A stretch of DNA of 64,000 nt from assembly GCA_965202585.1 (NCBI GenBank), contig OZ241830.1, forward strand, positions 67,766,001 to 67,830,000. Direction: 5' to 3'. The position numbers were made by a program, and so were the translations under genes. The notes beneath the pieces were generated by a model. That model was given only the letters and a program-made list of their open reading frames with translations, was not told the DNA's origin and did not search any database. This document shows, piece by piece, positions 1-48,849 of the stretch; the stretch's first letter is position 1; each line of letters begins with the position of its first letter. This stretch comes from Thalia democratica (Eukaryota).

Positions 1-2859
1 ATTTTTAAAGTCTAGTTTTATGGTCTTTGTAAAATTGAATATGTATTTACACTATAAAAGTGTTCCTACCCAAATAAAAATAACAAATTGATAAAAATGT
101 CATTTTAACCAACAACAATTATGCCAACTAAATAATTGGTTAACAATAGTTTTTGTAGTACCATTTAAACAAAGTTTTTATTTTGTATGTAAGATAACTG
201 TATTGTCTAAATGGCATAGATTTACTTTCAATTAGCTTGAAAACATTTAGTATCCTCATATTCATATGTTTTTAATGCGTGTATATTTTCTTCAAACTTT
301 ATATCTTATTTTTGCTTGCTTAGCCGTAATACTACTTACCTTTTAAAGTAATGAATCTACGTAGTAATATGTTTTTATCGCCGATCTTCTTTTAACATTT
401 CTGACTATTTCTTACCAAAGTAAAATTCAAACTTTCATTAGTTCTTGTTTTTATATTTCTGTAACTATTTACGTTGTAGCATTCATTGTAAACAACACAA
501 TTGTTTTTGCAAATCTTATGGGGTCGTAACCCATTGGATAAGTTTTAGTTTACAAAACCACATGGTTTAATAAACATGCTTTGCTTATGACTTACCTGAA
601 AAAAACTAAAACTTGATCATTTTTTCGAAGATTATTTTATAACTTTTCTGCAGTTCCTCTCGAATTGATAGCGTTTGTTTATAAAGTCTAGTTCGTTAAT
701 GTAGTTTAATTTTTTTTTTGTAGTATACTCCGTCCAAGTATAAATAAAATAAAGTAAATTTTCAGTTTTTGTCTTTGTTTAGCTTTTACTAGTCTTTCCG
801 ACGATTTAAGTTTTAATTTAACAATTTCTGAGATTTTTATGTTTTCAACCTCATTAAATATTGACATCAATAATTAGTTTGTTGTGCTTTCTAAAGATTT
901 TTGTTCTTAAATTAATTCAAGTTTTTAATACAGTTAATTACTGCCATCATATAATGAGCAAATATTTAAAATACAAAGTTTCATATTCACACTGTGGTTT
1001 TTAGTATTATAAGCTGGATATTTATTACAAACTATGCATATTTGTAGTAAATAATCCTGATATTATACTCTAAATCAAGTTCAACGATACTATGGAACTA
1101 ATTCAGAGTGACATTGTTGTTTTATGTTGTTGCTATGGGTTTCTTGAATTAATCTTGTTTGTACGTTCTATCGTCGCCTGTTAAAATTCAATGTCTAAAA
1201 CGATTTTTATTTTGTGTTATTTGCATTAATTTGTTGCCTAAAATATAACAAATTTAAGTACACTATTTAAGGGATTTTGTAGCCGTTTAGATTTCACTTT
1301 ACTCTGCTTTTGCTAATTGAATTTCTTTAATCAGCTGAGTAACTTATTTTTGTATATATGCTAACTGTTACTTTTTTACATCTTTCAAAAATACGTAGAA
1401 TATTTAATAACTCTTTGATTACTGATTGAGGTTCATATTCAACACCCTCGATATAGTTTTTACAATGTGTTGTGGATATTAGTAACAATTGCCAATGGAC
1501 CATAACTTTTTATCTTAACTAATGTTTAAAAACTTGCTCTTAGTTTTATTTTCAGTGCTTATAAAATGATTATTTTATCATTAAAATTAGATCTTTATTT
1601 GAATTCATTTTATGTACCACGTTTTTATGCAATTTTTGTAACAAATCCAAAAAAAGAGAATTTCTTGTAAACTGTGTCCAGTATACAAAATTAGGAAAAT
1701 ATAGAATACTAAGTAGAGTGACGTAATAATTAGAAATGATATTATGATTGATAGTATACTAGTATTAATAGTATCTAGCTTGTATTAATACTAAAAAACT
1801 TATAAGTTTTCGAACATTTGGAGAAATACTTGACATATGTATAGCCTGACAACTGTGCTACAAACTACTAAATACGACAGTTAATAAAAACCTCATTTAG
1901 ATAAAACAAGTACTGTTAAGTAAGGTTGCCATATTTTTAAAAATTGATTTTGTACTAACTTCGAATACGTTTGGTTTTAGATGATTAAATTCTGGCAACT
2001 ACGCTTTAAAGCTTCAACTTGAAAGTTTTGGTTTGTTGCCTATGTTGCCTAAAAATAATAGTCGAGTTGTATTTCTATTTATTTTTGTCAAGATAGTTAA
2101 AAGTAACTTTTTTTGTTGTTGAATTTTTTTTTTCGTTTAGCAAAATTGTACTTATTTCCGATAGGGAGAGCTAGTTCTTACGAATTTTAGAACATCGTGA
2201 AACAATGTGAACAGTCTAACAGCCATTCAGTTTTCAATAACTGCAATTGTACTACACCTGATGAGTTTGTAATTCAACAGTTTCTGTTTTTATTGATTAT
2301 GTTAACCTAATATACTCCTATTAGTTTTTATAAGGTTAAGAGTCACTTATAAGTTTTAAACGATAGTTTTTATGAGTAACTAACTAGTACATTTTTTTTA
2401 TATTCAAGCTAACTATAACTTTAGCTGTTAAACTATGAATTATAGTTAAAAATATTATTATATCAATAGCTCACTTATACTAAAAGTTTTTAAATGATTA
2501 AGATATACTTTAAGAGGCTGACCGTGTTTTCTATTTGTTTTAATTCTTATTTTAAATCATTATTTAGTTTATTTTTGTTTAAAATTTTAGTTTTTAATAT
2601 TATAAGTGTTCAAGTCCGCTTTTTTGAAAGCACGATTTTTGATAGAGATTAACTATTTTTTATATTGATATTCTTTAAGCTGTTACAAAAATAAGGTTAT
2701 AAACAATAAAACAACTTTGTTATAATGATAAAGATCATGTAAAGATGGAAATATTGTAAATAAGTATTGTAGTTTAACAAATTTTATCAAATTCAACTAG
2801 TGGTCTCGGAGTGTATTCAGTGTATTGATTTGCTTTTTTTCTTTTAGGCATATGTATCA

Positions 2860-3440
2860 ACTGACCTTGATGTACTCCGGGCTACTTGGGTCTCTGGCTT
2901 TATTTGAAAACACCACTGTAAGAGGTTCGGCAGTTTCGACAGAAGCCAGATTCGCAATAGCTTCGGGGCCATCTTATATCTGTAGTTGCTACCTCGGTCT
3001 GCGACCGTGTGCGAGAGGGTTTAAGAGCTAATAGCCTCTTCATTTTACTTATAAGTTTAGTTTAAATATAGACTAACAAGTATCTATATGCTTTATTATA
3101 CAATAAAATAAAAAAAACACATAAAGAAATGTTCACTACTATAGAAGGCTTCTTGCAGTTCGCGATTCCAGTTGCTGTAACAAATGGCTGCTCGTACAGT
3201 TTACTGGTTCAGAACGTAGGGACTTATACTTCCTCGTTGACACCGGCTGAAGAGCTAAAAAAGATACAATATTGAAATTAAGAAGAGAAAGATAGGTGCA
3301 ATAAGTTTATGCCATCGAATGTGTGGGCTTATACGTAGAGTTCAATGTTGAAATTGACCCAAACTGAAATTTGTTGCTGGAGGATAGCTTGTCTGCTACA
3401 GTATGCGTAAACTTATGAGTATGGCACGTTAACAACTCAA
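2860..3440 (-). pseudogene. Exon-like remnants of an unknown spliced gene (second copy ~46235-46830)
   Basis: GC-richer segments with minus-strand acceptor/donor-like borders (cttcag|CAACG, tctac|gtataag, ttttag|CTCTTC, ATCAAG|gtcagt). Open frames include QRRFELLTCHTHKFTHTVADKLSSSNKF and, in the second copy, MKRLLALKSSRTRSQTEVAT. The copies differ by a 1-nt frameshift and a GT>CT donor change. Confidence 0.35.
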
Positions 3441-3543
3441 ATCGACGTTGCTGAAGTAGGTATACAAAATGTGTATAGAACAAAGTATAAAAACTTCGAA
3501 GTTATGAAGTAAAGTACAAAGTAAATGTTTTGTAAATGTTTAA

Positions 3544-3708
3544 ATCATGTAGATTTTCCAAGATGGCAGCTTATGCTCAAAGCGTCAAGAGAGGTTTTGG
3601 CGGAGATCATCTAGATTTTCCAAGATGGCAGCTTATGCTCAAAGCGTCAAGAGAGGTTTTGACGGGGATCAGCTAGATTTCCAAAATGGCGGCTTACGCT
3701 CAAAGCGC
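3544..3708 (+). promoter_or_regulatory. 62-bp tandem monomers (about 3) with YY1-type motifs
   Basis: Units start at 3544, 3606 and 3668 (atca.ctagattttccaagatggcagcttatgctcaaagcg). The last has CCAAAATGGCGGC followed by GTGACGTG. Block A2 has two units at ~46955-47060. Confidence 0.6.
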
Positions 3709-4920
3709 TAAGTGACGTGAAGCTGCTTTCTTCTTGACATGAAGTCGGTAAAACTTGCTATTTCATTCGCTCGGCTGCCTATGTACACCTCGATTAAATA
3801 ACAGTTCCGCATGATCAAGTTCCGCATGATAAATATACTAATCATTATGAATATAAAGTTCAATTTACAAATTTACAATTTAAAAAGTTAAACAATTTAC
3901 GAGATACTCCATTATCAAGTATCACAAAATATACTTGAAGTTTAAATTAAATTACAAACAAGATTCATTAAAATTACTTTAACCAAATTTTTTTTAATAA
4001 AAATATACTAATCATTACAAATATAAAGTTAATTTAGACTTCAAGTAAAATCAATTACGAGAAGCTCAACAATCAAGCATAACAAAAAAAACTTGAAATT
4101 TAAATTAAATTACAAACGAGATTCATTTAAACTGTTTTTAACCACAATTTCTTGATAGAAATATACTAATCATTATAAGTATAAAGTTTAATTTAGATCT
4201 CAACTTAAACGAATTACGAGAAGCTGAAACAATAAAACATCACAAGTATATACTTGAAATTCAAATTAAATTACAAACGAGATTCATTAAAATTACTTTA
4301 ACCACATTTTTTTAAAAATATATAATCATTATAAATATAAAGTTTAATTTTGACCTCAAGTTAAACATTTTACGAGATACCACATAATCAAGTATCACAA
4401 AATATACTTGAAATTTAAATTAAATTACAAACAAGATTCATCCAAATTGCTTTAAGCACATTTTTTAATAAAAATATATTAACCATTAAAAATATGAAGT
4501 TTAATTTTGACCTCAAGTTAGACAATTAACGAGATACCACATAATCAAGTATCAAAAAATATACTTTAAATTTAAACTAAATTACAAACTAGATTCATTC
4601 GAATTGCACTCGAATTACACCAGGCATTATTTTATTGATAACAATTTCATCATAATTAATAATCATCATATCAACATAATCAAGTATTACAAAATATACT
4701 TTAAATTAAATTACAAACGAGATTCATTCAAATTGCTATGAGCACATTTTTATAATAACGTAAATCACGTAAAAGTATTGTGTTAGACAAACAATTGTTT
4801 CTTTGTAAGTATATTTGAAATGAAAAGTATAGTAACCATTTATAGTATAGTTATCTTTAAATTGATTTATTTTAAATTAAAGTTTTTTGTTAACGTTTTA
4901 TTGAAGTATTATGTTTGAAA

Positions 4921-4984
4921 AAGATTTATTATTTAAGCGCTGACGAGGTTTTTGACCGAAACATAGTTTGCATAATATAATCTT
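4921..4984 (+). ncRNA. Minimal type I hammerhead ribozyme, intact core (HHR1)
   Basis: AAGATT-TATTAT-TTAA-GCG CTGACGA GGT-TTTTG-ACC GAAA C-ATA-GT T^ TGC-ATAATA-T-AATCTT. All conserved core nucleotides are present, with a 15-bp bulged stem I, 3-4 bp stem II and 2-bp stem III. Predicted cleavage after 4968 (GUU). Confidence 0.85.
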
Positions 4985-5212
4985 GAAAGAACAGATACAT
5001 TATTTCTCTTCTATTAATTAAGATCTCTTTGTTTTTTTGTAAAAATCGAAGCATATAATATTATATTAACATTATATACTAGCGTTGAGGATCAATTTAA
5101 AATTGATGTGTAATTCAGCAATTATTAAGCTGTTCTGTAAGCGGGAGGTTGTGAAATAGAGTCCACTAGTCACAGTTTGACCCTTCGTGCAATTTAGACC
5201 CGTTCCCAAAAT

Positions 5213-5325
5213 AACTACGTACAACTTGGCTCAAATGTAGCTAAAAACATTTGAAACAGAAATCAATAGTGTTATTGGTAAATCTTCAGGCACTTTCTCT
5301 CGTTTGACTGCACTAGTTTAAAACA
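5213..5325 (+). mobile_element. Degenerate RTE-clade LINE fragment within the repeat unit (also ~6387-6499, ~47955-48068, ~49078-49190)
   Basis: With one frameshift it translates to LGSNVAKN...EINSVIGKSSGTFSRLTA(L/R)V*N, matching the RTE post-RT motif YLGS..EI..RIGKAS..F.RL..RVW. Confidence 0.7.
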
Positions 5326-6094
5326 TACCAGTTAGCTATAAATCTTTTGCACAGAAGTTTTGTTAAAATGTTAGAAATACAGATAAAACGAACTTAAACT
5401 GTCAAAGTAATGGTTTATTATGTCGATCAAAACATTAAAATCAAACTTTGATACTTGTTAGGTAGTAAAATTTTTTAGAGACATATTAAACTTTCGTAAA
5501 ATTTTTGTAAAACATATGTTTAATACTTTGAATATAATTTTGAGCACACGTTTATTATTATATTTTATCAATAAAATTATACTAATCATTATGAATATAA
5601 AGTTTAATTTTGACCTCAAGTTAAACAATTTACGAGAAACCTCATAATCAAGTATCACAAAATATACTTGAAGTTTAAATTAAATTACAAACGAGATTCA
5701 TCCAAATTGCACCAAGCATTATTTTTTTTAAAACATACTAATCATTATTAATATAAAATTCAATTTAGACCTTAAGTTAAACGAATTACGAGAAGCTCAA
5801 CAATCAAGCATCATAAAATGTATACTTGAAATTAAATTAAATTACAAAAAAGATTCATTCAAATTGCTATGAGCACATTTTTATAATAACGTAAAAATGT
5901 TGTGTTAGACAAACAATTGTTATTTATATTAAGTTAAACATTAAGTAAGTTTAACATTTTATTAACAGTTTATATTAAGTAAGTATATTTGAAATGAAAA
6001 GTATAATAACCATTTATAATATAGTTATTTTTAAATTAATTTACTTTAAATTAAAGTTTTTTTTTAATGTATTATTGAATTATTCTGTTTACAT

Positions 6095-6158
6095 AAGATT
6101 TATTATTTAAGCGCTGACGAGGTTTTTGACCGAAACATAGTTTGCATAATATAATCTT
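6095..6158 (+). ncRNA. Minimal type I hammerhead ribozyme, intact core (HHR2)
   Basis: Identical to HHR1 over the 64 nt. Predicted cleavage after 6142, 1174 nt downstream of the HHR1 site. Confidence 0.85.
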
Positions 6159-8046
6159 GAAAGAACAAATACATTATTTCTCTTCTAGTAGTTAAGATCT
6201 CTTTATTTGTTTTATAAAAATCGAAGCATATAATATTATATTAACATTATATACTAGCGTTGAGGATCAATTTAAAATCGATGTGTAATTCAGCAATTAT
6301 TAAGCTGTTCTGTAAGCGGGAGGTTGTGAGATAGAGTCCACTAGTCACAGTTTGACCCTTCGTGCAATTTAGACCCGTTCCCAAAATAACTACGTACAAC
6401 TTGGCTCAAATGTAGCTAAAAACATTGAAAACAGAAATCAATAGTGTTATTGGTAAATCTTCAGGCACTTTCTCTCGTTTGACTGCACGAGTTTAAAACA
6501 TACCAGTTAGCTATAAATCTTTTGCACAGCAGTTTTGTTAAAATGTTCGAAATAGAGATGAAACGAATTTAAACTGTCGAAGTAATGGTTTATAAGGTCG
6601 ATCAAAACATTAAAATTAAATTTTTATATTTGTTAAGTAATAAGTTTTATTAGAGACATATTAAACATTCGTAAAATTTTTGTAAAACATATGTTTAATA
6701 CTTTGAAAATAATTTTGAGCACACGTTTTAGTATAATCATTTCGGTCTAAAATTTTAACTGTTTTAAGTAGTTATTAAAAGGTTTATTACAGTATATAAG
6801 GGTTTAATTATAAGTATTCAATAATACTATATAGTGGAATAGTTTTCGAAAAAGTTTCATCTACAATGTATCTCATTAAAGTTGTCTGGAATAATATTAA
6901 ATGTAATTTTAACGACAAGATAAGTTTTATTACCAACTTACAAGTAAGAACAAATCTCGAGAATAAATTAATAACCTATTACAAACCGTCTATTTTATAA
7001 GCTAAAACTCGTTACTCAAACATTTTTTTACTGCTAAAAGCTATCAACAAACTATTTGGTTATAGAATACAGACAAATAAGTGCTACGTTTAAGTACCTC
7101 TCTATGTCATAAGTGTAATTTTTTAGTTTAATACCAATAGCTAATTCTACAAATTATTTCACAAGTGCAAATATCTAAAGTTTTAGAGATACAAAATATT
7201 TATTAGTTACGATTTAATTTTTGTACTTGTTTAAAAAAAAAGTTATTAGTTACTACTTTTGTATAGCTGAAAAAATGTACTTTGCACAAATAATTTAGTT
7301 TTACAAATTTTTAGCTTCATTTTTTTTCTCTTCTTGAAATTATTCAAAAACGTTTTGAAATTAGTTTTAAGTTTAACATTTTAAAAAAATAATTTTAAGC
7401 TAAGAAACTATGGATCCGCTTGCGACTTGGAACTTTTTTTTTTAAACCGATAACCTTTAGTTATCTCTTTGCTGCATTTTAAATTTTTATAAAATTCACA
7501 TCTAACTAACTTTTTGGTAAGGACTCAATACATCAGAAGATTTCTTATAATTATTTATTAGCTATAAAATACTAAGCCAATAATAAAAAGCTTTGTTTTT
7601 AGTTAAATGTTTACATTGTTAATAACTTTTCAGATCAAAACATATTATTTATGCTCATCTATGTTAATACCATGGAGAACTGTTCACAAAACACTAAGCT
7701 GTCTTCCGTATTTTTATTTAAAAGTTTACTGTTTTCTTTCAAAGTCAAAATGAAAATTGTACTTCTAAAATTGATTTATCTGCAGATTAAAATAGTCTTT
7801 TAGTTTTACAGAAAAAAGGAAATTATCTGGAAAACGTTTTGTAACTAAAATGCTGCCAATAATAATTAGTAGTATATTTACTATTTGCATACTTAAAAAA
7901 TGACAGTTAGAAAAACATTCGAAAAATTAACTTAAAAACTTATAGTTAAATGCGGCTGTAGTTTTTAAGTTTAAGTCAGAACAGGTAAAACTAGTATCAT
8001 ATTGAAATTTTTACTATTCTTAAATTTAGTATGCAGCTTTATTACT

Positions 8047-8240
8047 GTTTATTTTCGTATTCGTCTTTTTTTTTTCGACAGACTGACAACGGACAACTCA
8101 TAGTAAAGAAGATCGATGGTTTGAATAATTAAGATGAGTTCGTTGCAAATGAAAACATACCAAGATATTTGATTGCACTCGAAAAAGTAGAGAAAAGTAA
8201 AAATATCTAATTTTATTTGCTTGCTTAAATAATACAAGTT
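8047..8240 (+). repeat. Short dispersed repeat next to the Kelch junction
   Basis: tttattttcgta.tcgtctttttttttcga..ctgac..aacggac recurs at ~9504-9563, ~22450-22505 and ~50782. Its right part resembles ~60090-60230. Confidence 0.7.
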
Positions 8241-8301
8241 TTTTTAAATTGCGTTACTTAAAAATTTCTAACTGACTAACAACGGACCGAGTTTTAACCG
8301 A

Positions 8302-9021
8302 GTGGTTTGTTTGAAAGGAGAAATTTATGCAATAGCAGCAGGTAACTACATGTTTAAGGAAGACAAAACTACCATTGAAAAATACATTGCAAAAACGAAT
8401 ACTTGGGAGAAAGTTTCACAAATAGACGACAACGGAGGACGAAGTTCATTTTGCTGCTGCGCTTTCATGAACGAAATATATTTACTAGGCGGCTGTTACC
8501 GATGGTACGTGACTGACTCTTGCTTGAAGTTTGATGCAACAAGCCGCGCTTGGAAGGGAGTCACGGAGATGAGCGAAGCGCGCCAGCATGCGGCGTGCGC
8601 CGTTTTCCAAGGAAGAATCGTGGTTTGCGGCGGGGAAGATGACGAAGAAGAAAATTACTCGGAAACGGTTGAGTCGTATGACGTCATCACCGACACTTGG
8701 TCGCCGATGCCCAGCATGATGGAAAGCAAAAGCAGGCACAGCGCAGTTGCGGTGAGAAGCAAGTATTACGTCATCTGCGAACACGATTTTTGCGAGGTCT
8801 TTGACAGCGTTTGTAACAAGTTTGTTGCCTTAAAAGAACCGAATCTAAAGTTTAGACGAATGAGTAGAGCTGTTTCATTTGGCAGTAAAATTTTTGTGTT
8901 TCGTTTTACTCAACCTAGTTTGGTTGTTTATGATGTTGATAAAGACGAGTGGTCGGAGGAACTGTGTGAAATTACCAAAAATGTTCAATGCTTTTCCTGT
9001 ACAGTTGTGCCATTTTGTTAA
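8302..9021 (+). CDS. Kelch-repeat ORF, 5'-truncated, no BTB/BACK domain (K1)
   Basis: Kelch motifs IYLLGG, IVVCGG, VESYDVITDTWSPMPSM. Open to TAA at 9019-9021; the first in-frame ATG is at 8350. Confidence 0.85.
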   Translation: MVCLKGEIYAIAAGNYMFKEDKTTIEKYIAKTNTWEKVSQIDDNGGRSSFCCCAFMNEIYLLGGCYRWYVTDSCLKFDATSRAWKGVTEMSEARQHAACAVFQGRIVVCGGEDDEEENYSETVESYDVITDTWSPMPSMMESKSRHSAVAVRSKYYVICEHDFCEVFDSVCNKFVALKEPNLKFRRMSRAVSFGSKIFVFRFTQPSLVVYDVDKDEWSEELCEITKNVQCFSCTVVPFC

Positions 9022-10464
9022 TAAATTTGAAGTATTAATTGATTAGCTAAGTGCCAAATAATTGTATAAATTGTACAGAAATCTAAGACAAAATTCATTC
9101 AAAAACATCTTTATTGAAGCAACAAACAAGTAAAATCGATTTCGGCTAACGCTTTTCAATTACTTTAGTTAGCAACTAATTTTAAGATTAAATTTTGAGT
9201 ATATAAATAGTTAGAGGTTACATCAGAAAAATCAATTAACACTAATTAGCATAATTGAGCAAAAATTAACTAAACATTCACAATTCATAAATGCATATAC
9301 AAAACAGTTTATCAGTAATTTAACTAAGATAAGCAACATTAAAAATAAAATAAAAATAAGCGACAAAATTCAAATAAAATCTATAACAACTTATAAAGAT
9401 TAGATTTATAAACGTATTGTTGCTTACACAAATTAGGTTTACATGTTTTTATAAATAGAGATTCTAAAACACTTAGGTGATAATCGTTACGAGCTTTTTT
9501 ACTCTTTATTTTCGTAATCGTCTTTTTTTTTCGACTGACTAACAACGGACGATTCATAGCAAAATGTTTTTATCATATTCGTTTAGATCAGAGTAGTACA
9601 AAGCTGTATGCAATAAAGAAGTTTAATATGACTAATAATTTAATTTTGCATAAAAACATGATAAATTATAAGGTACATTTTGTAGTAGAAATCAATTTAG
9701 AACACTTATAAATTGAATCATTCAAGTCGACATAAATATCGCAAACAAGTTCAAACTCACTTAAGAACCAAAAATACCCTACAAACTTGTAACTTTTTAA
9801 AAAGGCTCTTACTAAACTATTATACAAAAACATTCATATTTTTGATAGCAGATTGATAAAATAAAATTTAAAAGTTAAAAAAACTAACAAGATAAAGTTT
9901 CAAACTTTATAATACAAAACTTTAAAAATTTTAATTATAATGTGTTTAAGGCTTGTAATTGATTATATGTTATAAAAACCTACATTTTATGCAATAATGT
10001 AAAAAATAGTGTCTTATTTCTAGAAGTACAAATAGCATAAAGAAGAGTTACTCATTATTTTAAATCATTACTGGTTTGTAATTAGTTTTATTGTTTGAGA
10101 CAGCAAACGAAGGAAAAAAAAAATGTTTTTACTTCACACATTTTTATCAGTTTAAATTTTTAGTATAAAAAAACTAGGTAGCACAAAATTACAATTTCCT
10201 AAAACTTCAATTTTCTAAACGAAACTTCCAATAAAGTAGATAATTTTTAAAATCAACACAATTATAAAAAAAAGAGTAGAAACCTTAAGAGCTCTTCTGC
10301 AAGCTTATCGAAAGAAAAAAATCTAAAATAATTGAAGGTTTGTGCTTAATAACAAAATTTTTCAAACGTCCTTGATAAAAGTAGGAACAAAATTCTACAA
10401 AAATTTACTAAAAAGGCATAAGCAGCGAAACTAAAACGGTCAATTGAAATTGAGACGTGCCGAA

Positions 10465-13400
10465 TCAAACGACGTTGTGTTTGAACAGCACGTAGTTGGC
10501 CATCGTGTGGTTGCCCGACTGCCGGTACATCAAGCTGAGGTTGAAGGCGATCTCGTGCCGGAGGTCGAAGCTGTCCTCGCACACCGCGTCGACCACATTG
10601 GCAGGTGGTCCGCACTTCAACGCGTCCTCGTACATGTGCACCGCAAAGTGGTTCAGCCCGATCTGGTGGAGGGCGCGCCCGATGTTGTACAGCGACTCCT
10701 GCTTGTTGTTCCGCAGCTGCCATTTCAAACATTATACACGTTTGTTCAAGTTTTATTTCAAATATCATGCCAACTGGCCTTTTCAGTTTATATTAAATAA
10801 CATCATTGAAAATATTAAATAACATCATCTTGAAAGAAGGATTTTTTGTTACTTATTCAAACAGAATCTGACTCATGATTTTTTATAAAATTTTAAGTTA
10901 TTTATTAAGTTATTTTATATGTTTATTGTTATTTAATGCACGAAGTTAGATTTATGTTTGTTTATATCCGAATGAAATAAGTGCGGGTTAAAAACTGAAT
11001 TACGAAAAACCTTTATATAGCTTTTAATAATCTTTAATAGTTAACCTAACAATGAAATATTACAAACAACTTTGTTTCATTAATTTCAAAAACGTCAGCT
11101 TTTAGACTTTATCAAAACAAATATTTTAGCAAGAAAACTAAACATTACCATTGAGGATCTTCAACGTAAAAAACAATCTTTCAAAATAATCAAACCTGGC
11201 AATACTTGGCAAGGAGTGCGAAGGCTTGCGCGACATAAGTGTGCTTGTTACCGCAAGTTTTCTGCGTGAGTATGTGGCAGTAGCAAATTCCCACTATCAA
11301 ATGCAGTTCCGGATTTTCTTGCTCCTGCAAGTAATCTTGTTATTTATCAGATAAGTTTATTCGTTAGCACTGACGAAAGTTGGTTTAAAAAATCTACGTA
11401 CATTTTCTAAATGAATCTAAAGACATTTTTTAACTGTAAAAGTCTTACTTTAATTTACACATTCACTTTTTTAATACATTACACAAAGATACTATAAAAG
11501 TTTCAAAGATTTATGAATTTTGGATATAAGTAAAATAACGAGCTTAAAAAACTATATACTTTTGGTTTTTCTCAGAAAGGGATTAAAATTGTTAATTACG
11601 TTTAGTTTGCTTATAATTACTTTTTAAAACTTTACTTGGTTTTTAATAAAATATATTAGTGAAGTTTTATTTTGTACTGTTCTGTTTTTGATAACTAAAA
11701 ATTCTCAAAAACCAATAAATTACAGATACATCTACAAAAAATTGTCAAACTTCTTCTAGTAGTTCGATGTAATAATTAAGTGCAGGTCTGAAGTTATTAG
11801 ATGCAATATCTCCATGAGCGAACATGCTTTGAAGCGGGTAAACTTTCTTATCTTGTACCTGTAATTGTATACTTGCTTTTCGTGAATGCTTTTAAAAAGA
11901 AAACAGATTAATCACTTTGTTTTGCTAGTAATTAATTTTGAAAATAACACAAAAATAACTTTTCATCATTGCGAAAAACTTTAATTTACTCTGCAATAAA
12001 AAATGGTAAACTTAACTAGTCATTAAAATAATACTTTACATTAGCACAAAACAAAAAAGGTCAACATAATTTTACTTAATATGCAGCGCATTATTGTTGT
12101 AAAAACAATTACTATTGGAGTAAAGTCATAGATAACCAATACTGGGATATAGACAGTATTCAATAAACACGTATTTATTATCTTAGATAAAAAACCTTAA
12201 ACACAAAATTTTCTGCCTTGCAATTAATAATACTTTTCTGCAAATTTTTTTGACACAATACTGACCACCATGATTCTGTGGAGAAACCTGTGAGTGTTTT
12301 TGAGAACCTTCTGACTGTGAGACATCCTGGTGACCACCTGATTGAATATGTTCCACACGTGGTTCTGCACCGATGACTGATCCTCCTTCTTCGACAAGAT
12401 CACCTTCCTTCAATTGATATGCAACAGGTTTGTATGGAAACAATGTACAGTAAGACAGTGTTTGTATAAATGAGGTTAGAATTTCAAACTTATATTTATA
12501 AAAAAAAACACAGTCTTTATTTTGGATGCCATTTATAAAAGCACTAAAAGTTTTAATACAGTTTATATTTTAAAAAGATATATACTAAAATCCAAAATTA
12601 GCTGAAAATACTGCTTGATAAGTTTATTTATGTTTGTAAAATTAAAAGTTAATAAAAATGCAGCAAAGTATTCATTTTATCTGTAAACAACACAAATAAC
12701 TTGATTCAAACAAACTTGAGTATTTTGAAGGCGTAATAGTACCACCCGCTCAACAGGCTGAACCTGAACGAAATAACTTCCAGCTTGCTTCTTGAAATTT
12801 GCGCGCGCGAAAAGAAGTTTTTCTCCTTCATAACGTGGTCGCTTATCAAACAGGCCTCCTTGTATCTTTTGCACGTGTTGAGCAGGTTCAGCAACTCCTT
12901 GATTGATAAGCTTGATTATATTGGTGGAGTCTTAGCTCGTAAAAGTTTTTGTACTAAAGAAATAATATGCAGCAAAAATATTAAAATACTTTGGAATATT
13001 AAGTTATAAACTGTTTGTATTTAAGAAAGTTTTTTTTTTGGTATGATTTAACCTTATATTAAACTTGAGCTTATCTCACAGCATACAAAGGTCCAGGCTT
13101 AAGCTCTGTAGACTTTCGCTGATGTTTTCGTTAAAAAAGAATTGATATACTTTTTAAATTTTTGCATACACTTTGAATCAGTTTTTAGTAAATATGGAGT
13201 GTTTATACTGTCATAAAACAACAAAATATTATGTTCTAAAACTATCCCTTTTCATTTCCGTAGAAGCAAACCTTAATTTAGCCAAAAACATTTATAGAAG
13301 AAAATTACTTATAATTTAATACTAACCTGAATGTGTTATAACTTTCAACTTGAATAAGTTTTTAATAATACAGTGCTCATTGACTTGTCCGGACATGTTG

Positions 13401-16400
13401 GGCAATTCTGTAAAGGTATCCGGATAAGCATTTTTCAAGATAAGTACAAAATAAAGTGTTTTATAAAATAATATAACTGCTGTAATTTATGCAATGTAAA
13501 ATAAATAATAATAGCTCAGCTCTTCTTTTACTGCTTGAAATTTTTTACACTTTACTTTTCAAAATGTCGTGAAAAGTCGACTCGCCTATGCTAAAATGCT
13601 TTATTATAAAAGACTCTAAAACATTGTTTTTCTATCTTTTTACAAACTTCTAGTTTATTTTCAAAGCTTATTGCAACTCGTGTTTTTTTTTTATTTTTGT
13701 AACTTGTCTATTTCTGAAACCTTGTATGTTGAGTATGTCAAACTTATAAAACTTTTTATTAATAAAAAAAAATTATGAATTTATCTTAAATATAAATTGG
13801 TTCAATTAAGAACTTTTGATAGTTTAAATTAAAAACCAAACATATAAAAACTTTAATATATTAATTTTCTAAAAAATAAAAATTAAAAACATTATTTTTT
13901 AAAACTGATTTACTTTACATATAAAGGTTTCTAATAATTAAACTAGTTTTAAACAAAATTGAACCTAAGCTTTACTAGTATTATTACGTCATAATCATGT
14001 AATAAATTGCAGACCTTATAAAATCATTTTAAATCTTTTACATCATCAAAGCTTAAAAAGTAGTATGTATAGCTACTGAATGTTTTTATTTATTTTCTTC
14101 TCGACTGAATTTTCCGTATAAGTGAGCGTCCGGATAAGTGAATAAGCATTGTACAACTAAACCATTTTTAAATAAAAAAATTAGACTCATATTTCAAACT
14201 CGCTTTCTAGTGTCAAAAGCAAAACTAAAAGAGTTTCAAATACACCAGCGTTCTAAAACATACCGGTGAAACTTTATCAAAACAAACTTTGTAAAAGTCG
14301 ATCCACTGCCTCTGCTTGAAGACCTGCCAGTCGGCTTTCAGGTACAATTCCTCGTCAATCCTCTGCTTGCCCGCCCTCTTGCAAGTCACTTTGATCTCGC
14401 CTGCGAACGGGTTGGTTGTTTTCCTACTTCGCTTCACTATTGACAGCTGAAAATCATGCTTTCACGTTGAATCAGTTTATTTGTACTTATTTTAAAAGTT
14501 GTTAAGTGCCCAGACAGTATGAGAAAATTAAAGTTTGATAATTCGGTAAAGACCTTGTAAATAATATATTTTTTGTTTACACAAAGTAAAGTGAGAAATG
14601 AAGAATCAGCATGATATGTAGAAGATAAAATAAGTAATTTTTTTAAGAAAAATTTAACAGATAAAAAAATAAAACTTGCATTCAATATGGTCGTCAAAGG
14701 TTTTTTTGACAAAATTTTCTAGGTTTTCTAAACTTATTCCAGATATTTTAAATAACAATATTTTGGTTTCTTTTGGTTTGAAAGTAAATTTAAAGTAAAC
14801 AACTGACTTAGAATGTATAACAACATTAAAAAGACACTGTAAATCTACTTAAAATATGTTAAAAAAGCACTTTATTATTATTTTCTTTTTCTATATGATA
14901 GATTTTTGATATATAATCGAAATTTAATTTCTTTGCATGTTAAGTTTCTTTAAAATTCCAGATTTTTTAATGATATTTGTTCAAAATTCCAGATTTTCCA
15001 GGCTTTTCCCAGATTTCTCAAACTCCAGGTTTTTTTTACAAAATTGTCAAATGTCAGGTTTTTTAACAACTCTGATACGAAAATAACCAAACAAAGTACT
15101 TTTATATTTATTGGAAAACAAGAAAACTGTCTGTACTAAGCAGAAAAAGTACTAACTGAAATTAACCTCAGTTTTGAAAGTACTTTTCAGTCTGTTGGCG
15201 AGCATAATCAATACAACATCCGCTGCAGCTGCTAGCTTCTTTCTGTGATTAATCATGTTTATTAGCATTAAGGGTATAAGTTAGTTAAGAATTAATAAAC
15301 ATTTTTTTTACTTCCAGTAACTTTAAAAAAAATAGTCTATCAGTTGGTATTAGTGATCTACCGTATCCTAATTTTGTGAATCGGTTTAAGCACTTATAAT
15401 TGAGCAAAATATTTCTTTAATTTAAAATTTGCTTTAAAGCAGTGTTTCTAATAATATATGTATTAAAACTCTATGTTTTCATAATTGGTTATAAAACTTC
15501 GGTGCAATTTTTATTATTAAGAAAAACATTCTACAAAAAAAAACATTTTTGAAAACATTTTAACTTAATAATTTAACCACAATAAAATAATCTACTGTAA
15601 AAAGTATTAATAATACAATTACAAAACAACTAATGTTCGGTTTTTTTTCTATAGTTTCTACACATTAAGCGTTTCATCAGAACAGTAACAGAGTTAAAAT
15701 AAACCTTTTTTAAAAATAAAAAAATTTCACATTATGACGTTTCAAATAAATTTAAATAACTTCAGTTGGCTAATGCATTAGCCAACTAAAACTATTCCAT
15801 TTTATTTGAAACGTCGTAATGTGTATTTTTTTGATCCTTTAAAAAATATGCTAACTTTGTTATTGTTCTGATGAAACTACAGTAAACAAACCGAACATTA
15901 GTTTTTTTTTTGTATTATTAATAGTAATCTCTGCTTTCGTATCAAAAGATTTGGCTTTTATCGAATAAAAAAACAGCTCCAAATACTGTTTTAAGTACAT
16001 AAGTAATCTTCTTAAAATTATCTTTTCCTCATCTAGATTTTATTATACATATTTATTAATAATTTTTAACTTTGCTAAAGCTAAACAGAACGTAAGGAAA
16101 AATCAGACTTCAAATTAGGGTTTCATTATAAAAAAATACTATTGAACTTTAAATAGCTAACGATTCTGAAATTCTTTTTAAGCTGATAAAAGTGTTCTGG
16201 TAACTCGAAACGGCACAGCTTGACTTCTTAAACATAAAAACAAACGCGCTAACTTAACATTCAACAAATAACAAACTTTTTATTAGGATGCTGGCCCCAC
16301 TTTTTGAAAACTTGGAACCTGCAATTCAGCAGCCTCATCTGGTCTTTCGGTGAAATTTCATTTTCATTCTCCCCTTTCTCGGCTCCATCTAGTGTCTTAA

Positions 16401-16764
16401 AGTATTATCAAAAAATTAGACACTTTACAAAATCTTAAAAACTTTCAAACAAAAGCAGACTAATTAAACAACCAAAACACCTCGATGGCGACGCGGTATT
16501 CCCCGGTGTCGAGCAAGATGGCGGCCAGCTCCAGCCTGATGTCGACCGAGTCCTCCGCCGATATCTGCAGGCACTTGAAAAAATTCTCCTTGGCGCTCTT
16601 GTAGTCGTTGAGCTTCAGCAGCGACATGCCCTTCAGCTTGAACAGCTCCTTGCTGGTGGAAAAATGCGCGAAGTGGTGGACTTCCAATTCCTCGATTAAC
16701 CGCAACGATTCGGCGTACTGGCCCGCTTCGAAGCACGCCACGCAAACACTTATCTGCACGTCCG
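10465..16764 (-). CDS. GTF3C3: GTF3C3/TFIIIC102 TPR subunit, C-terminal half, copy 1 (9 exons)
   Basis: Phase-compatible GT-AG exons at 16481-16764, ~16319-16395, ~15167-15242, 14288-14446, 12716-12897, 12266-12407, 11751-11858, 11196-11324 and 10465-10716. Motifs WNIFNQV, HRFLHRIM, QESLYNIGRALHQIGL and DLRHEIAFNLSLMYRQSGN match the GTF3C3 C-terminus as I recall it. Borders of exons 2-3 are uncertain. Confidence 0.9.
13371..14151. mobile_element. pogo/Tigger-like (Tc1/mariner) MITE in a GTF3C3 intron; second copy 26301-27081
   Basis: TA|CAGTGCTCATTGACTTGTCCGGAC ... GTCCGGATAAGTGAATAAGCATTG|TA: imperfect 24-bp TIRs with a TA target duplication. Confidence 0.8.
14686..15074. mobile_element. 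Degenerate copy of the CAGGGTTGCCA-terminated MITE family; duplicate at 27616-28004
   Basis: Homologous along its length to 29725-30156 (ttccaggtttt subrepeats, gtataacaacatt.aaaaga core). Confidence 0.6.
15605..15923. mobile_element. Palindromic foldback element; second copy 28537-28847
   Basis: Arms tattaataatacaa...ttgtattattaata pair along most of their length around a perfect 24-bp centre, agttggctaatgcattagccaact (15764-15787). Confidence 0.8.
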
Positions 16765-16869
16765 CTGTTTGTCAGGATGTTAGAGTTTGTTGATTTTTTT
16801 TTGTTTGGTGCCAGTACTATAAAGATAATTGCTTAATTTAGAAAAATACTTGTTAAGAAAAACAAAAAG

Positions 16870-21141: not shown

Positions 21142-21966
21142 ACAGTTTTAGATGAACATTTAAAAAACTCAAACAAAGTGTTTCACAAAACAATAGAAAA
21201 TGTGAAATTTATTACTCCAAAGAAACAAAAAGCAAATTTTAACCGAGTGGTTTGTTTGAAAGAAGAAATTTATGCAATAGCAGCAGGTAACTACATGTTT
21301 AAGGAAGACAAAACTACCATCGAAAAATACATTGCAAAAACGAATACTTGGGAGAAAGTTTCACAAATAGACGACAACGGAGGACGAAGTTCATTTTGCT
21401 GCTGCGCTTTCATGAACGAAATATATTTACTAGGCGGCAGTTACCGATGGTACGTGACCGACTCCTGCTTGAAGTTTGATGCAACAAGCCGCGCTTGGAA
21501 GGGAGTCACGGAGATGAGCGAAGCGCGCCAGCATGCGGCGTGCGCCGTTTTCCAAGGAAGAATCGTGGTTTGCGGCGGGGAAGATGAAGAAGATGAAAAT
21601 TACTCGGAAACGGTTGAGTCGTATGACGTCATCACCGACACTTGGTCGCCGATGCCCAGCATGATGGAAAGCAAAAGCAGGCACAGCGCAGTTGCGGTGA
21701 GAAGCAAGTATTACGTCATCTGCGAACACGATTTTTGCGAGGTCTTTGACAGCGTTTGTAACAAGTTTGTTGCCTTAAAAGAACCGAATCTAAAATTTAG
21801 ACGAATGAGTAAAGCTGTTTCATTTGGCAGTAAAATTTTTGTGTTTCGTTTTACTGAACCTAGTTTGGTTGTTTATGATGTTGATAAAGACGAGTGGTCG
21901 GAGGAACTGTGTGAAATTACCAAAAATGTTCAATGTTTTTCCTGTACAGTTGTACCATTTTGTTAA
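21142..21966 (+). CDS. Kelch-repeat ORF K2, longest copy, still 5'-truncated
   Basis: The frame is open from 21142 (TVLDEHLKNSNKVFHKTIENVK...FNRVVCLK) to TAA at 21964-21966 and abuts the end of block B1. Confidence 0.85.
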   Translation, partial: TVLDEHLKNSNKVFHKTIENVKFITPKKQKANFNRVVCLKEEIYAIAAGNYMFKEDKTTIEKYIAKTNTWEKVSQIDDNGGRSSFCCCAFMNEIYLLGGSYRWYVTDSCLKFDATSRAWKGVTEMSEARQHAACAVFQGRIVVCGGEDEEDENYSETVESYDVITDTWSPMPSMMESKSRHSAVAVRSKYYVICEHDFCEVFDSVCNKFVALKEPNLKFRRMSKAVSFGSKIFVFRFTEPSLVVYDVDKDEWSEELCEITKNVQCFSCTVVPFC

Positions 21967-23408
21967 TAAATTTGAAGTATTAATTGATTAGTTAAGTGCC
22001 AAATAGTTGTATAAATTGTACAGAAATCTAAGACAAAATTCATTCAAAAACATCTTTATTAAAGCAACAAACAAGTAAAATCGATTTCGGCTAATGCTTT
22101 TCAATTACTTTAGTTAGCAACTAATTTTAAGATTAAATTTTGAGTATATAAATAGTTAGAGGTTACATCAGAAAAATCAAATAACACTAATTAGCATAAT
22201 TGAGCAAAAATTAATTAAACATTCACAATTCATAAATGCATATACAAAACAGTTTATCAGTAATTTAACTAAGATAAGCAACATTAAAAATAAAATAAAA
22301 ATAAGCGACAAAATTCAAATAAAATCTATAACAACTTATAAAGATTAGATTTATAAACGTATTGTTGCTTACACAAATTAGGTTTACATGTTTTTATAAA
22401 TAGAGATTCTAAAACACTTAGGTGATAATCGTTACGAGCTTTTTTAACCTTTATTTTCGTAATCGTCTTTTTTTTTCGACTGACTAACTACGGACGATTC
22501 ATAGCAAAATATTTTTATCATATTCGTTTAGATCAGAGTAGTACAAAGCTGTATGCAATAAAGAAGTTTAATATGACTAACAATTGAATTTTGCATAAAA
22601 ACATGATAAATTATAAGGTACATTTTGTAGTAGAAATCAATTTAGAACATTTATAAATTGAATCATTCAAGTCAACTTAAATATCGCAAACAAGTTCAAA
22701 CTCACTTAAGAACCAAAAATACCCTACAAACTTGTAACTTTTTAAAAAGGCTCTTACTAAACTATTATACAAAAACATTCATATTTTTGATAGCAGATTG
22801 ATAAAATAAAATTTAAAAAAACTAACAAGATAAAGTTTCAAACTTTATAATACAAAACTTTACAAATTTTAATTATAATGTGTTTAAGGCTTGTAATTGA
22901 TTATATGTTATAAAAACCTACATTTTATGCAATAATGTAAAAAATAGTGTCTTATTTCTAGAAGTACAAATAGCATAAAGAAGAGTTACTCATTATTTTA
23001 AATCATTACTGGTTTGTAATTAGTTTTATTGTTTGAGACAGCAAACGAAGGAAAAATACAAATGTTTTTACTTCACACATTTTTATCAGTTTAAATTTTT
23101 AGTATTATAAAAAAAAACTAGGTAGCACAAAGATATAATTTCCTAAAACTTCAATTTTCCAAACGAAACTTACAATGTAGTAATTAACTTTTAAAATCAA
23201 CACATTAAAAAAAAAAAGAGTAGAAATCTTAAGAGCTCTTCTGCAAGCTTATCGAAAGAAAAAAATCTAAAATAACTGAAGGTTTGTGCTTAACAACAAA
23301 ATTTTTCAAACGTCCTTGATAAAAGTAGGAATAGAATTCTACAAAAGTTTACTAAAAAGGCATAAGCAGCGAAACTAAAACGGTCAATTGAAATTGAGAC
23401 GTGCAGCA

Positions 23409-29400: not shown

Positions 29401-29701
29401 TTAAACAAGCAAAACACCTCGATGGCGACGCGGTATTCCCCGGTGTCGAGCAAGATGGCGGCCAGCTCCAGCCTGATGTCGACCGAGTCCTCCGCCGATA
29501 TCTGCAGGCACTTGAAAAAATTCTCCTTGGCGCTCTTGTAGTCGTTGAGCTTCAGCAGCGACATGCCCTTCAGCTTGAACAGCTCCTTGCTGGTGGAAAA
29601 GTGCGCGAAGTGGTGCACTTCCAATTCCTCGATCAACCGCAACGATTCGGCGTACTGGCCCGCTTCGAAGCACGCCACGCAAACACTTATCTGCACGTCC
29701 G
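23409..29701 (-). CDS. GTF3C3: GTF3C3 C-terminal half, copy 2 (9 exons)
   Basis: Exons at 29418-29701, ~29257-29333, ~28097-28172, 27218-27376, 25646-25827, 25196-25337, 24681-24788, 24126-24254 and 23409-23660. Frames and splice sites appear intact. Confidence 0.9.
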
Positions 29702-29724
29702 CTGTTTGTCAGGAACTTGTTAAG

Positions 29725-46700: not shown

Positions 46701-47662
46701 GAATGTGTGGGCTTATACGTAGAGTTCAATGTTCAAATTGACCCAAACTGGATTTTTTTGCTGGAGGACAGTTTGTCTGCTACAGTATGCGTAAACTTAT
46801 GAGTATTGCACGTTAACAACTCAAATCGACGTTGCTAAAGTAGGTATACAAAATGTGTATAGAACAAGGTATAAAAACTACGAAGTTATGAAGTAAAGTT
46901 TAAAGTAAATGTTTTAAAAAAGCAAATACTTGAATAAGAAGGTTTTGGTGGAGATCATCTAGATTTTTCAAGATGGTAGCTTATGCTCAAAGCTTCAAGA
47001 GAGGTTTTGACGGGGATCAGCTAGATTTCCAAAATGGCGGCTTATGCTCAAAGCGCTAAGTGACGTGAAGCTGCTTTCTTCTTGACATGAAGTCGGTAAA
47101 ACTTGCTATTTCATTCGCTCGGCTGCTTATGTACACCTCGATTAAATAACTGATTCCTCATGATCAAGTTCCACATGATAAATATACTAATCATTATGAA
47201 TATAAAGTTTAATTTACCTCAAGTTAAACAATTTACGAAATACCCCATAATCAAGTATTACAAAATATACTTGAAATTTAAATTAAATTACAAACGAGAT
47301 TCATTCAAATTGCACCAGGCATTATTTTTTTGATAACAGTGTACTAATCATTATGAATATAATGTTTAATTTAGACCTTAAGTTAAACGAATTACGAGAA
47401 GCTCAACAATCAAGTATCACGAAGTATAACTAAAATTCAAATTAAATTACAAACGAGATTCATTCAAATTGCTATGAGCACATTTTTATAATAACGTAAA
47501 TCACGTGAAAGTATTGTGTTAGACAAACAATAGTTTTTTTGTAAGTATATTTGAAATGAAAAGTACAATAACCATTTATAATATAGTTATTTTTAAATTA
47601 CTTTACTTTAAATTTAAATTAAAGTTTTTTGTTAACGTATTATTGAAGATTTATGTTTGAAT

Positions 47663-47726
47663 AAGATTTATTATTTAAGCGCTAACGAGGTTTTTGACCA
47701 AAACATAGTTTGCATGATATAATCTT
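47663..47726 (+). ncRNA. Hammerhead ribozyme copy with inactivating core changes (HHR3)
   Basis: CTAACGA (G5>A at 47684) and CAAAAC (G12>A at 47700), plus one stem I change. Confidence 0.8.
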
Positions 47727-48785: not shown

Positions 48786-48849
48786 AAGATTTATTATTTA
48801 AGCGCTGACGAGGTTTTTGACCGAAACATAGTTTGCATAATATAATCTT
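48786..48849 (+). ncRNA. Minimal type I hammerhead ribozyme, intact core (HHR4)
   Basis: Identical to HHR1 and HHR2. Predicted cleavage after 48833. Confidence 0.85.

Follow-up and report, generated by a model that had tools for sequence, protein, structure and literature searches.

A tandem hammerhead array in Thalia democratica as a probable retrocopy of spliced-leader trans-spliced, Penelope-type RNA

Type I hammerhead ribozymes (HHRs) occur in several animal satellites, namely newt satellite 2, Schistosoma Sm-alpha and cave-cricket pDo500, in which helix III is unstable and the ribozyme works best as a dimer of neighbouring motifs. In these satellites the monomers are short, the arrays very large and the transcripts abundant. 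The locus described here, in contrast, contains a handful of long units, and its helix III variant is devoid of self-complementarity. It lies in the window, i.e. the whole stretch of 64,000 nucleotides of Thalia democratica DNA that was analysed (contig OZ241830.1, 67,766,001–67,830,000). Another relevant phenomenon is the reverse transcription of trans-spliced RNA, the footprint of which is a genomic copy of the spliced leader (SL) joined to post-acceptor sequence. Slamovits and Keeling are said to have described such relic spliced leaders in retroposed genes in 2008, as the “recycled cDNAs” of dinoflagellates. In our tunicate case the retroposed RNA would, judging from the sequence, be that of a ribozyme-bearing transposon and not a host mRNA.

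The HHRs in the pLTRs of Penelope-like elements (PLEs; Cervera & de la Pena 2014, PMC4209133) resemble those considered here in being of type I with a 2-bp helix III and a small loop, near-palindromic in the main variant of our family. Another resemblance is the copy number, which runs into the thousands, most copies being solo or paired on opposite strands at a distance of 50–700 nt (PMC4209133). The intron of D. virilis Penelope ends at the 5' boundary of helix I (PMC4209133), which is the position of the splice acceptor in the present family as well; here, however, the acceptor appears to serve SL trans-splicing rather than a cis intron. The target-site duplications and alternative 3' ends of the window family recall the PLE “tail” (PMC11167929), although the alternative 3' extension measures ~95 nt here and the PLE tail 30–40 bp. 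The window HHR further differs from those of PLEs by its long helix I (15 bp with two bulges), and no RT/GIY-YIG ORF is linked to its family in the loci read.

Metazoan non-LTR retrozymes (Cervera & de la Pena 2020, PMC7229834; Li, Clavereau & Pollet 2026 preprint, doi 10.64898/2026.07.22.740005) are likewise non-coding, AT-rich same-strand tandem units with a type I HHR in each and with PLEs in the same genome. Their monomers are short (~150–450 nt), whereas the unit described here has 1.12–1.17 kb, forms arrays of 1–5 units and is a mosaic with an unrelated satellite; its arrays are not dispersed and independent but belong to one segmentally duplicated region and 3 unplaced contigs. Plant LTR retrozymes (Cervera et al. 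2016, PMC4918200) also have two flanking HHRs, and their circles of 600–1000 nt are comparable in size to the RNA that would be released here. They possess type III HHRs in LTRs of ~350 bp, a PBS and PPT and a high GC content, and are mobilised by Gypsy (PMC4918200); the window HHR, in contrast, is of type I, and what is repeated at its flanks is simply the duplicated unit.

Anatomy and predicted activity of the hammerhead motif

The identical 64-nt type I HHR motif is found at three sites of the window: 4921–4984, 6095–6158 and 48786–48849. The first two copies, both on the + strand, start 1174 nt apart and have intact cores with predicted cleavage sites at 4968|4969 and 6142|6143. The catalytic core (4940–4968 and 6114–6142) is complete: it comprises CUGACGA (C3 U4 G5 A6 N7 G8 A9), GAA (G12 A13 A14), the A15.1–U16.1 pair and, at position H17, which is any base other than G, a U. 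Three helices surround the core. Helix II has 4 bp (GGUU/GACC with one U·G) and is closed by G10.1–C11.1, and the open helix I consists of 3 bp (GCG/UGC with one G·U), a 4-nt bulge, 6 bp, a 1-nt bulge and again 6 bp. The initial annotation had described this pair as exactly recurring type I hammerheads of the Penelope or retrozyme kind in same-strand tandem units, and all of this is borne out. Its further statement that the arrangement recurs at 47663/48786 holds for the second of these copies, which is intact and identical to 4921–4984 (48773–48849 on the + strand together with its SL remnant). The first one (47650–47726, + strand, with its SL remnant), located 1123 nt upstream, is dead: it has three substitutions, one in helix I and two at essential core bases (G5>A and G12>A), with which the core at 47682 departs from the type I consensus.

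A chance origin of the motif was also considered and is ruled out by the shuffle expectation and by the genome-wide counts. The 29-nt core is present 4 times in the window at ≤3 mismatches, the number expected from shuffles being 0. A genome-wide count, suggested in the initial annotation, gave at least 2,335 matches of the core against 0 in the reversed control and revealed a dispersed, non-coding family.

The active monomer fold of the window variant is weak (−3.3 kcal/mol vs −13.1 for the minimum-free-energy fold, which differs from the HHR fold) because helix III consists of only 2 bp with a 3-nt loop. Loop 3 is near-palindromic in the main variant of the family (ACUUAGU) but not in the window variant (ACAUAGU), the energies of the intermolecular helix III being −6.2 and −1.7 kcal/mol, respectively. 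These are nearest-neighbour energies, which leave out tertiary contacts and protein assistance; on this model the window variant is predicted to cleave poorly. In principle, a transcript across the array, if made, could release an RNA of 1174 nt.

Spliced-leader junctions and the dispersed family

All four HHRs of the window are preceded by an SL-like 16-mer which ends exactly 16 nt before CUGA, a feature absent from the initial annotation. The 16-mer of unit 1 (4908–4923, + strand) differs from the Ciona SL at 3 positions and from the ATTCTGTTTGAATAAG variant at 2, and its last 3 nt (AAG) constitute the outer end of helix I. The 16-mer of unit 2 (6082–6097, + strand) has 3 mismatches and that of the intact HHR at locus 2 has 2, so that each of the four shows 2–3. 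The SL of this genome is identical to that of Ciona (PMC1488885, Table 1). It is found in exact form 1,269 times genome-wide vs 9 times in the control, and about a quarter of 100 listed exact matches run directly into a window-type HHR. SL-to-HHR junctions number 612 and TTTTTTAG splice-acceptor junctions at the same position of the HHR number 881, with 0 in the control for both. At 211 further sites an SL is followed by 9–17 nt and CUGAWGA from other HHR families (control 0). As the SL occupies at 612 sites the place where 881 copies carry the acceptor, the segment 4908–5062 is best read as a retrocopy of SL trans-spliced HHR RNA. The SL remnant abutting each HHR would be the mark that identifies the HHR piece as such a retrocopy.

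It could be argued that the HHR piece is a 5'-truncated dispersed copy or the result of a DNA-level transfer, and that the 16-mer is a chance AT-rich likeness of the SL that owes nothing to trans-splicing. Given 2–3 mismatches per 16-mer, matches with ≤3 mismatches are indeed expected ~5 times in 64 kb, and the four SL-HHR copies of the window count as one event because they descended from one insertion. We nevertheless regard this explanation as unlikely. The match ends exactly at the junction seen in hundreds of exact SL-HHR copies, some of them with the same 16-nt spacing (e.g. C1:32021445). All four remnants carry the G6 variant of the SL, which is also found exact elsewhere in the genome, and the homology of the window copy to acceptor-type copies halts precisely at the acceptor AG.

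Only ~155 nt around the window HHR belong to the dispersed family, and the exact window variant is confined to the C6 cluster and 3 unplaced contigs. The family copies are mostly solo or head-to-head inverted pairs and have two alternative 3' ends; of 10 copies that had been selected independently of the HHR, only 3 retained an intact core. Elsewhere in the genome, three same-strand HHRs lie 3.07 kb apart (C2:48,186,810–48,192,979) and others 3.66 kb apart (C1:37,172,641–37,180,002). The acceptor-type copies form the 3' end of a discrete non-coding element of 570–585 nt (~90% identity; candidate matches number at least 1,272); at one locus (L049) a discrete 5' end and a 14-bp target-site duplication are seen. 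The family is PLE-like in that a splice acceptor adjoins helix I on its 5' side, that copies may be solo, truncated at the 5' end or arranged as inverted pairs, and that a target-site duplication is seen. The 3' tail of the window retrocopy (4985–5062, + strand) contains GAAAG, an AAUAAA-like signal and the “long-form” extension, and was aligned with four dispersed copies (L022, L026, L028 and L029), the homology to which ends at ~5062. No poly(A) was seen in the retrocopies, whose 3' end is defined solely as the point where homology ceases, and a target-site duplication is not visible around the insertion 4908–5062.

The genome contains GIY-YIG/RT ORFs of 779–918 aa. Their tail, read by eye only, displays an acceptor CAG and then a putative minimal HHR of the U3-A8 kind, and the same 19 nt of this motif are found directly after the SL elsewhere in the genome. 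A tblastn search with the genome's own PLE ORFs gave no match in the 64-kb window, in agreement with the initial annotation, which saw no Penelope ORF nearby. No PLE-like or long ORF was found beside the HHR in 10 dispersed copies examined, nor was a linked RT and GIY-YIG ORF between direct repeats found in these copies or in the window. At the 6 PLE loci examined the window-type HHR was absent, and the HHR-like motif in the readable PLE tails differs from it. The autonomous partner of the window family was not found among the PLE and dispersed loci examined.

The 1.17-kb unit and its genomic cluster

The two tandem units occupy 4461–6742 of the + strand (4461–5563 and 5564–6742) and are 85% identical overall, the identity being 94% for 4805–5565 vs 5979–6742. 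Unit 1 starts at ~4461, inside an array of ~6 copies of a 157-nt satellite (3831–4775) which extends upstream of it. The satellite is followed by a local spacer “U” (4790–4907, + strand; repeated at 5964–6081), which separates it from the retrocopy and is common only to copies of the cluster. Downstream of the retrocopy lies the local sequence “D” (5063–5553), which is pieced together from older repeats and ends at the breakpoint of the tandem duplication, where it joins the satellite. Unit 2 starts with ~2.3 copies of the satellite (5563–5940) and finishes with its own tail and “D” (6159–6742, + strand). The sequence beyond ~6742 is present once per locus and is common to locus 2, and there is no third unit. 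The satellite upstream of the first unit is the same as that inside the unit, as expected for DNA duplication. Arrays of this satellite are also located on C6 (21.4–22.2 Mb and 77.1 Mb), C8, C10 and C4, i.e. it is a separate genome-wide satellite. Full-length “D” (~490 nt) was found only 26 times, always at C6:67.54–67.93 Mb or on the contigs C1025, C1183 and C1184, while its sub-parts 5211–5319 and 5319–5550 are found elsewhere in the genome. In four contig-only sequencing runs that were compared, all of which gave just short unitigs, a 350-nt marine-metagenome contig covers 6052–6395 with ~98% identity; none of the contigs spans the whole unit, and the joints are explained by self-similarity of the satellite.

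The block 1–9071, which harbors the array and a Kelch-repeat ORF (8302–9021; no BTB or BACK exons were found upstream of it), is 90–95% identical to 42548–51807. Both are products of one segmental duplication, and locus 2 is therefore not an independent insertion. The block recurs upstream on C6, with HHR cores 33,579 nt apart, and the full-length units are confined to one 0.4-Mb region of C6 and 3 unplaced contigs, within segmental duplications of 33–43 kb. The arrays hold 1, 2 or 5 units (the 5-unit array with a spacing of 1120 nt), and the period, 1174 and 1123 nt in the window, ranges from 1113 to 1423 nt in the rest of the cluster. Between segmental copies, units that correspond in position are 96% identical, vs 95–92% for neighbouring units. 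In at least 5 arrays the upstream HHR is decayed, and such upstream copies tolerate the substitutions G5>A and G12>A, the latter at a CpG. A diversity scan across the cluster gave 0.013 for the core vs 0.047–0.059, a contrast based on copies picked by their core pattern and on only ~3 independent core changes; conservation of the tail and of the arms of helix I does not exceed that of “D”. The two window 64-mers are identical though their surroundings differ by ~6% (p ~0.017), a possible sign of constraint or of gene conversion.

From sequence alone it is conceivable that the array arose by rolling-circle reverse transcription followed by a single insertion. A different proposal, that of a functional long retrozyme-like element or ribozyme satellite, follows the interpretation of the initial annotation; in its full form, transcripts would cleave themselves at both HHRs, the linear 1174-nt RNA so released would be circularised by a tRNA ligase and the circle would be the amplification intermediate. 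The proposal agrees with the low GC content of the unit, with its non-coding nature, which the annotation had stated (no ORF longer than 76 codons was found), and with the occurrence of same-strand units with intact identical HHRs at locus 1 and in several arrays, one of 5 units. The identity of the 64-mers despite the divergence of their flanks also fits, and PLE reverse transcriptases encoded in the genome could act in trans. We consider it very improbable all the same: the unit is 3–7 times longer than animal retrozymes of ~170–400 nt (PMC7229834), all 26 full-length units come from one chromosomal region or from 3 unplaced contigs, and the unit is a mosaic with an independent satellite that also stands upstream of the first unit. 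Inactivation of the upstream HHR in several arrays, the non-palindromic loop 3 and the weak helix III of the dimer likewise argue against it. Since the evidence points to local duplication of DNA as the source of the period, the claim of a 1.17-kb retrozyme is to be dropped. On the whole, the initial annotation is partly supported.

Proposed origin of the array and its implications

The Rfam hammerhead models gave no match at the gathering score in the window and none at E ≤ 10 with 1.4 kb or with the 76-nt motif, so that the match to Hammerhead_1 which the initial annotation had in mind was not obtained; the main variant of the family and a second HHR family (two family loci) gave none either. 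This is not counted against the motif because the published minimal HHRs of animals and PLEs were found by descriptor searches rather than by Rfam models (PMC4209133). It is hardly credible that the motif is merely a conserved repeat segment which happens to contain CUGANGA...GAAA, in spite of the Rfam result, the deviating minimum-free-energy fold and the free decay of the copies, given that all 11 core positions, A15.1–U16.1, H17 and G10.1–C11.1 are present in an architecture equal to that of published animal type I and PLE HHRs (PMC4209133), that the second family (L053:1336–1405) combines the same core and the same acceptor placement with wholly different helix I and II sequences which still pair, and that the differences between the window and main variants preserve pairing (A-U to G·U at 2.1, C-G to U·G at 10.4). 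A count of covariation in helix I was set aside: the AU-rich distal helix pairs in several registers, the subfamilies differ by indels and the copies are closely related.

Most probably, the array of the window is a retrocopy of an SL trans-spliced, PLE-type HHR RNA that was later duplicated at the DNA level, and not a giant retrozyme. According to this model, the RNA of an abundant non-coding Penelope-type HHR retroelement would have been trans-spliced to the tunicate SL at the acceptor abutting helix I, the expected junction being SL followed by ATTTATTTAAGCA-CUGACGA. The trans-spliced RNA would then have been reverse-transcribed and inserted beside the 157-nt satellite, giving rise to the segment ~4908–5062 composed of the SL, 16 nt, the HHR core and a ~95-nt tail. 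A tandem duplication of 1.1–1.2 kb at the DNA level, reaching from inside the satellite to the end of “D”, would have placed the HHRs 1174 nt apart, and unequal exchange may have enlarged the arrays to as many as 5 units. Segmental duplications of 33–43 kb in the Kelch-gene region would have carried the entire locus along, and the HHRs of the array would be passengers that decay neutrally.

A broader reading, which we also favor but hold somewhat less firmly, is that PLE-type HHR elements in this tunicate routinely receive the SL by trans-splicing at an acceptor within helix I and that the spliced RNAs, some of only ~90–190 nt (SL, HHR and tail), are retrotransposed. Hundreds of new copies from several HHR families would then start with the SL, and the array of the window would be one such copy, later amplified as DNA. 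A literature search found no paper joining hammerhead, spliced leader and tunicate.

A self-cleaving retrozyme of 1.17 kb would, if true, have extended the range of sizes known for ribozyme retroelements of animals. The probable origin of this tandem HHR pair by ordinary duplication calls for caution in pipelines which call two same-strand HHRs a retrozyme. The locus is an example of HHR retroelement copies which begin with the host SL, and it offers a sequence-level handle on the processing of PLE-type RNA in a chordate relative. SL trans-splicing at the edge of helix I would explain why this genome has so many very short insertions with an HHR, which make up a large class. If true, this coupling of SL trans-splicing, ribozymes and PLE mobility would be previously undescribed.

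Hammerhead motif and origin of the tandem units

The 64-nt sequence at 4921–4984 of the window is repeated exactly at 6095–6158 and 48786–48849, and a fourth copy at 47663–47726 differs from it by three substitutions. It reads as a type I hammerhead ribozyme motif (HHR). Helix I is formed by a 5' arm (4921–4939) and a 3' arm (4969–4984), which pair in three blocks of 6, 6 and 3 bp separated by bulges of 1 and 4 nt, in that order; one G.U pair adjoins the core. The core comprises CUGACGA and a later GAA, with U at H17; helix II (GGUU/GACC) carries a UUU loop and helix III (AC/GU) an AUA loop. The scissile bonds are predicted between 4968 and 4969 and between 6142 and 6143. The 29-nt core was absent from shuffled windows. 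The Rfam search proposed in the initial annotation recognised none of the copies, not even with a 76-nt query at E<=10. Judged by its anatomy, the motif is a genuine hammerhead of the animal type I or Penelope-like element (PLE) kind, with cleavage only predicted, and the type I assignment of the identical 64-mers at 4921–4984 and 6095–6158 stands. The copy with its core at 47682 carries G5>A and G12>A, which by standard core rules should make it catalytically dead.

Self-comparison of the window delimits two tandem units, 4461–5563 and 5564–6742, whose identity is 85% overall and 94% over the satellite-free part. Four parts make up the mosaic of each 1.17-kb unit: 157-nt satellite monomers, of which six precede unit 1 and ~2.3 lie inside unit 2; a 118-nt spacer; the HHR segment; and, at the unit end, ~490 nt of local sequence termed D. 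ORFs longer than 76 codons are lacking in the unit, and no PLE-like coding sequence was found in the 64-kb window, in agreement with the earlier remark that no Penelope ORF lies nearby. A genome search with the whole unit shows that its satellite part also exists independently, in arrays on several chromosomes, and that the remainder occurs only in the cluster to which the window belongs; the window lies on contig C6. Full-length D is present 26 times in the genome, 20 times at C6:67.54–67.93 Mb and 6 times on contigs C1025, C1183 and C1184, and the arrays hold 1, 2 or 5 units. No sign of movement of the unit to another locus was seen in the genome searches.

The junction of D with the satellite at ~5553–5563 is what would be expected from a head-to-tail DNA duplication starting inside the satellite. 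Across the segmental copies, similarity to window unit 1 is 93–96% for first units and 92–95% for second units, the ranges overlapping; the closer first units suggest that two units were already present when the segmental duplications took place. The initial annotation had proposed a long retrozyme-like element with a 1174-nt monomer, which departs from non-LTR retrozymes in both testable features, monomer size and dispersal. The best explanation of the 1174-nt period is that a mosaic, which by chance includes one HHR retrocopy capped by a spliced leader (SL), was duplicated locally in tandem.

The satellite itself (AT-rich, 3831–4775 and 5563–5940) also forms long arrays on C6 (21.4–22.2 Mb and 77.1 Mb), C8 (34.05 Mb), C10 (38.7–38.9 Mb) and C4, and three runs give it a very high k-mer depth, suggestive of a major satellite of the species or its relatives. 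Within D, a ~110-nt repeat at 5211–5319 matches many unlinked loci at 75–79% identity and is an older dispersed repeat. At 3544–3707 lie 2.7 tandem copies of a 62-nt repeat, 92% identical and fairly rich in GC compared with the region.

Positions 1–9071 align with 42548–51807 at 90–95% identity and 8292–16777 with 21237–29714 at 98%. The hammerhead arrangement said to recur near 47663 and 48786 holds exactly for the second copy and not for the first; both lie within the duplicated blocks, and the recurrence reflects segmental duplication. These blocks are marked by near-identical Kelch-repeat ORFs of 239–262 aa on the plus strand (8302–9021, 21178–21966 and 51038–51757), upstream of which no BTB or BACK exons were seen. 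The exact window HHR variant occurs four more times upstream on C6, spaced 33,579 nt. At 53326–54297 (minus strand) a protein-kinase ORF (Pkinase, E 5e-39) runs uninterrupted for 323 aa, possibly as a gene with a single exon or as a retrogene.

Dispersed family and likelihood of ribozyme action

The assembly (802 Mb, eukaryotic, GC ~27%) contains at least 2,335 matches to the HHR core with up to 3 mismatches, versus none for the reversed control. The main variant has C at position 10.4 of helix II (U in the window) and U in loop 3 (A in the window). Ten dispersed copies have only ~90–250 nt around the HHR in common, and in none of them does a long ORF adjoin it. A genome query with the upstream flank of one dispersed copy delimited a discrete element of ~570–585 nt with the HHR in its final 75 nt; candidate matches to it number at least 1,272, with ~90% identity, and one copy is bounded by a 14-bp target-site duplication. 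The window copies belong to a subfamily with a longer 3' end (~95 nt extra), their homology stopping at ~5062. Dispersed copies are mainly solo or in inverted pairs, as described for PLE hammerheads (PMC4209133). Same-strand spacings of 3.07 and 3.66 kb occur elsewhere in the genome, and these repeats are candidates for the autonomous partner of the family. At another locus (L053:1336–1405) a second hammerhead family has CUGAAGA, helix II UCCC/GGGA and helix I GGC/GCC, with the acceptor TTTTACAG directly 5' of helix I; this family shares the core, and its helices differ in sequence yet pair.

The active monomer fold of the window HHR is calculated at -3.3 kcal/mol versus -13.1 for the MFE. With a helix III of this kind, animal type I HHRs act as dimers via the palindromic helix III and loop (PMC4209133, PMC7229834). 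The corresponding intermolecular duplex amounts to -6.2 kcal/mol for the main variant (ACUUAGU) and to only -1.7 for the window variant (ACAUAGU). G12>A at a CpG is found in the upstream copies of at least 5 arrays, one of them having G5>A besides and one a helix II change, and the core is intact in 3 of 10 family copies picked without reference to the HHR. Within the C6 cluster the helix I arms and tail are conserved no better than D. The identity of the two window 64-mers against ~6% flank divergence (p ~0.017 by our own arithmetic) is the only hint of constraint and may reflect gene conversion. For one PLE examined in vitro, insertion did not need HHR cleavage, and none of the reads terminated at the cleavage site (PMC11167929).

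Spliced leader and Penelope-like elements

The Ciona SL ATTCTATTTGAATAAG (PMC1488885, Table 1) or its G6 variant is found 1,269 times in the genome, versus 9 for the control. About a quarter of the 100 SL matches listed are followed directly by ATTTATTTAAGCA-CUGACGA; the SL-to-HHR junction occurs 612 times genome-wide (control 0). In 881 other HHR copies the identical position is occupied by TTTTTTAG, a polypyrimidine-AG acceptor (control 0). At 211 further sites, belonging to other HHR families, the SL is followed by 9–17 nt and CUGAWGA. All four window HHRs are preceded by SL-like 16-mers (4908, 6082, 47650 and 48773) with 2–3 mismatches each and the G6 variant throughout. They stop 16 nt short of CUGA, as in the window copy's subfamily, and the final three SL bases are the first three of the 64-mer, pairing within helix I. 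The simplest reading of these sequences is that the element RNA would be trans-spliced at the acceptor next to helix I; the spliced product would then be retroposed, and the window insertion would be one of the resulting copies.

SL-HHR copies often stand head-to-head, the 5' ends of their SLs touching or sharing a few bases (C2:37580004/37580048, C4:42320309/42320348, C1:67172889/67172921 of the assembly G000), a pattern suggestive of a template switch at the capped 5' end in reverse transcription. A near-exact SL, ATTCTGTTTGAATAAG, lies in genomic DNA at 10852–10867 (minus strand; paralogue 23777–23792), and after it come a stretch resembling a 5'UTR and an ATG ORF of 140 aa (10346–10768, minus strand) that had no Pfam match. 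The whole looks like a retrocopy of a trans-spliced mRNA.

GIY-YIG searches of the genome gave 69 scored matches with open frames of 779–918 aa, at loci showing the inverted and partial-tandem architecture typical of PLEs. One PLE family (loci L043, L044 and L045) is young, its copies being 97% identical with RT/GIY-YIG ORFs of 779–918 aa. Its 3' tail at L043 (4470–4540 in reverse-complement coordinates) includes an acceptor CAG and after it UUGAAAA, a 7-bp helix II, GAAA and AGAUCU. Inspected by eye, the part after the acceptor reads as a minimal HHR that has the U3-A8 covariation published for the core (PMC4209133) and a palindromic AGAUCU helix III. The 19 nt after this acceptor also directly follow the SL at several loci, so that PLE RNAs appear to be trans-spliced likewise. 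The layout is the same as in D. virilis Penelope, where the 3' boundary of its intron maps to the 5' end of helix I (PMC4209133). The point of interest is that, throughout the genome, SL trans-splicing appears coupled to PLE-type elements that bear hammerheads, a coupling which the window illustrates.
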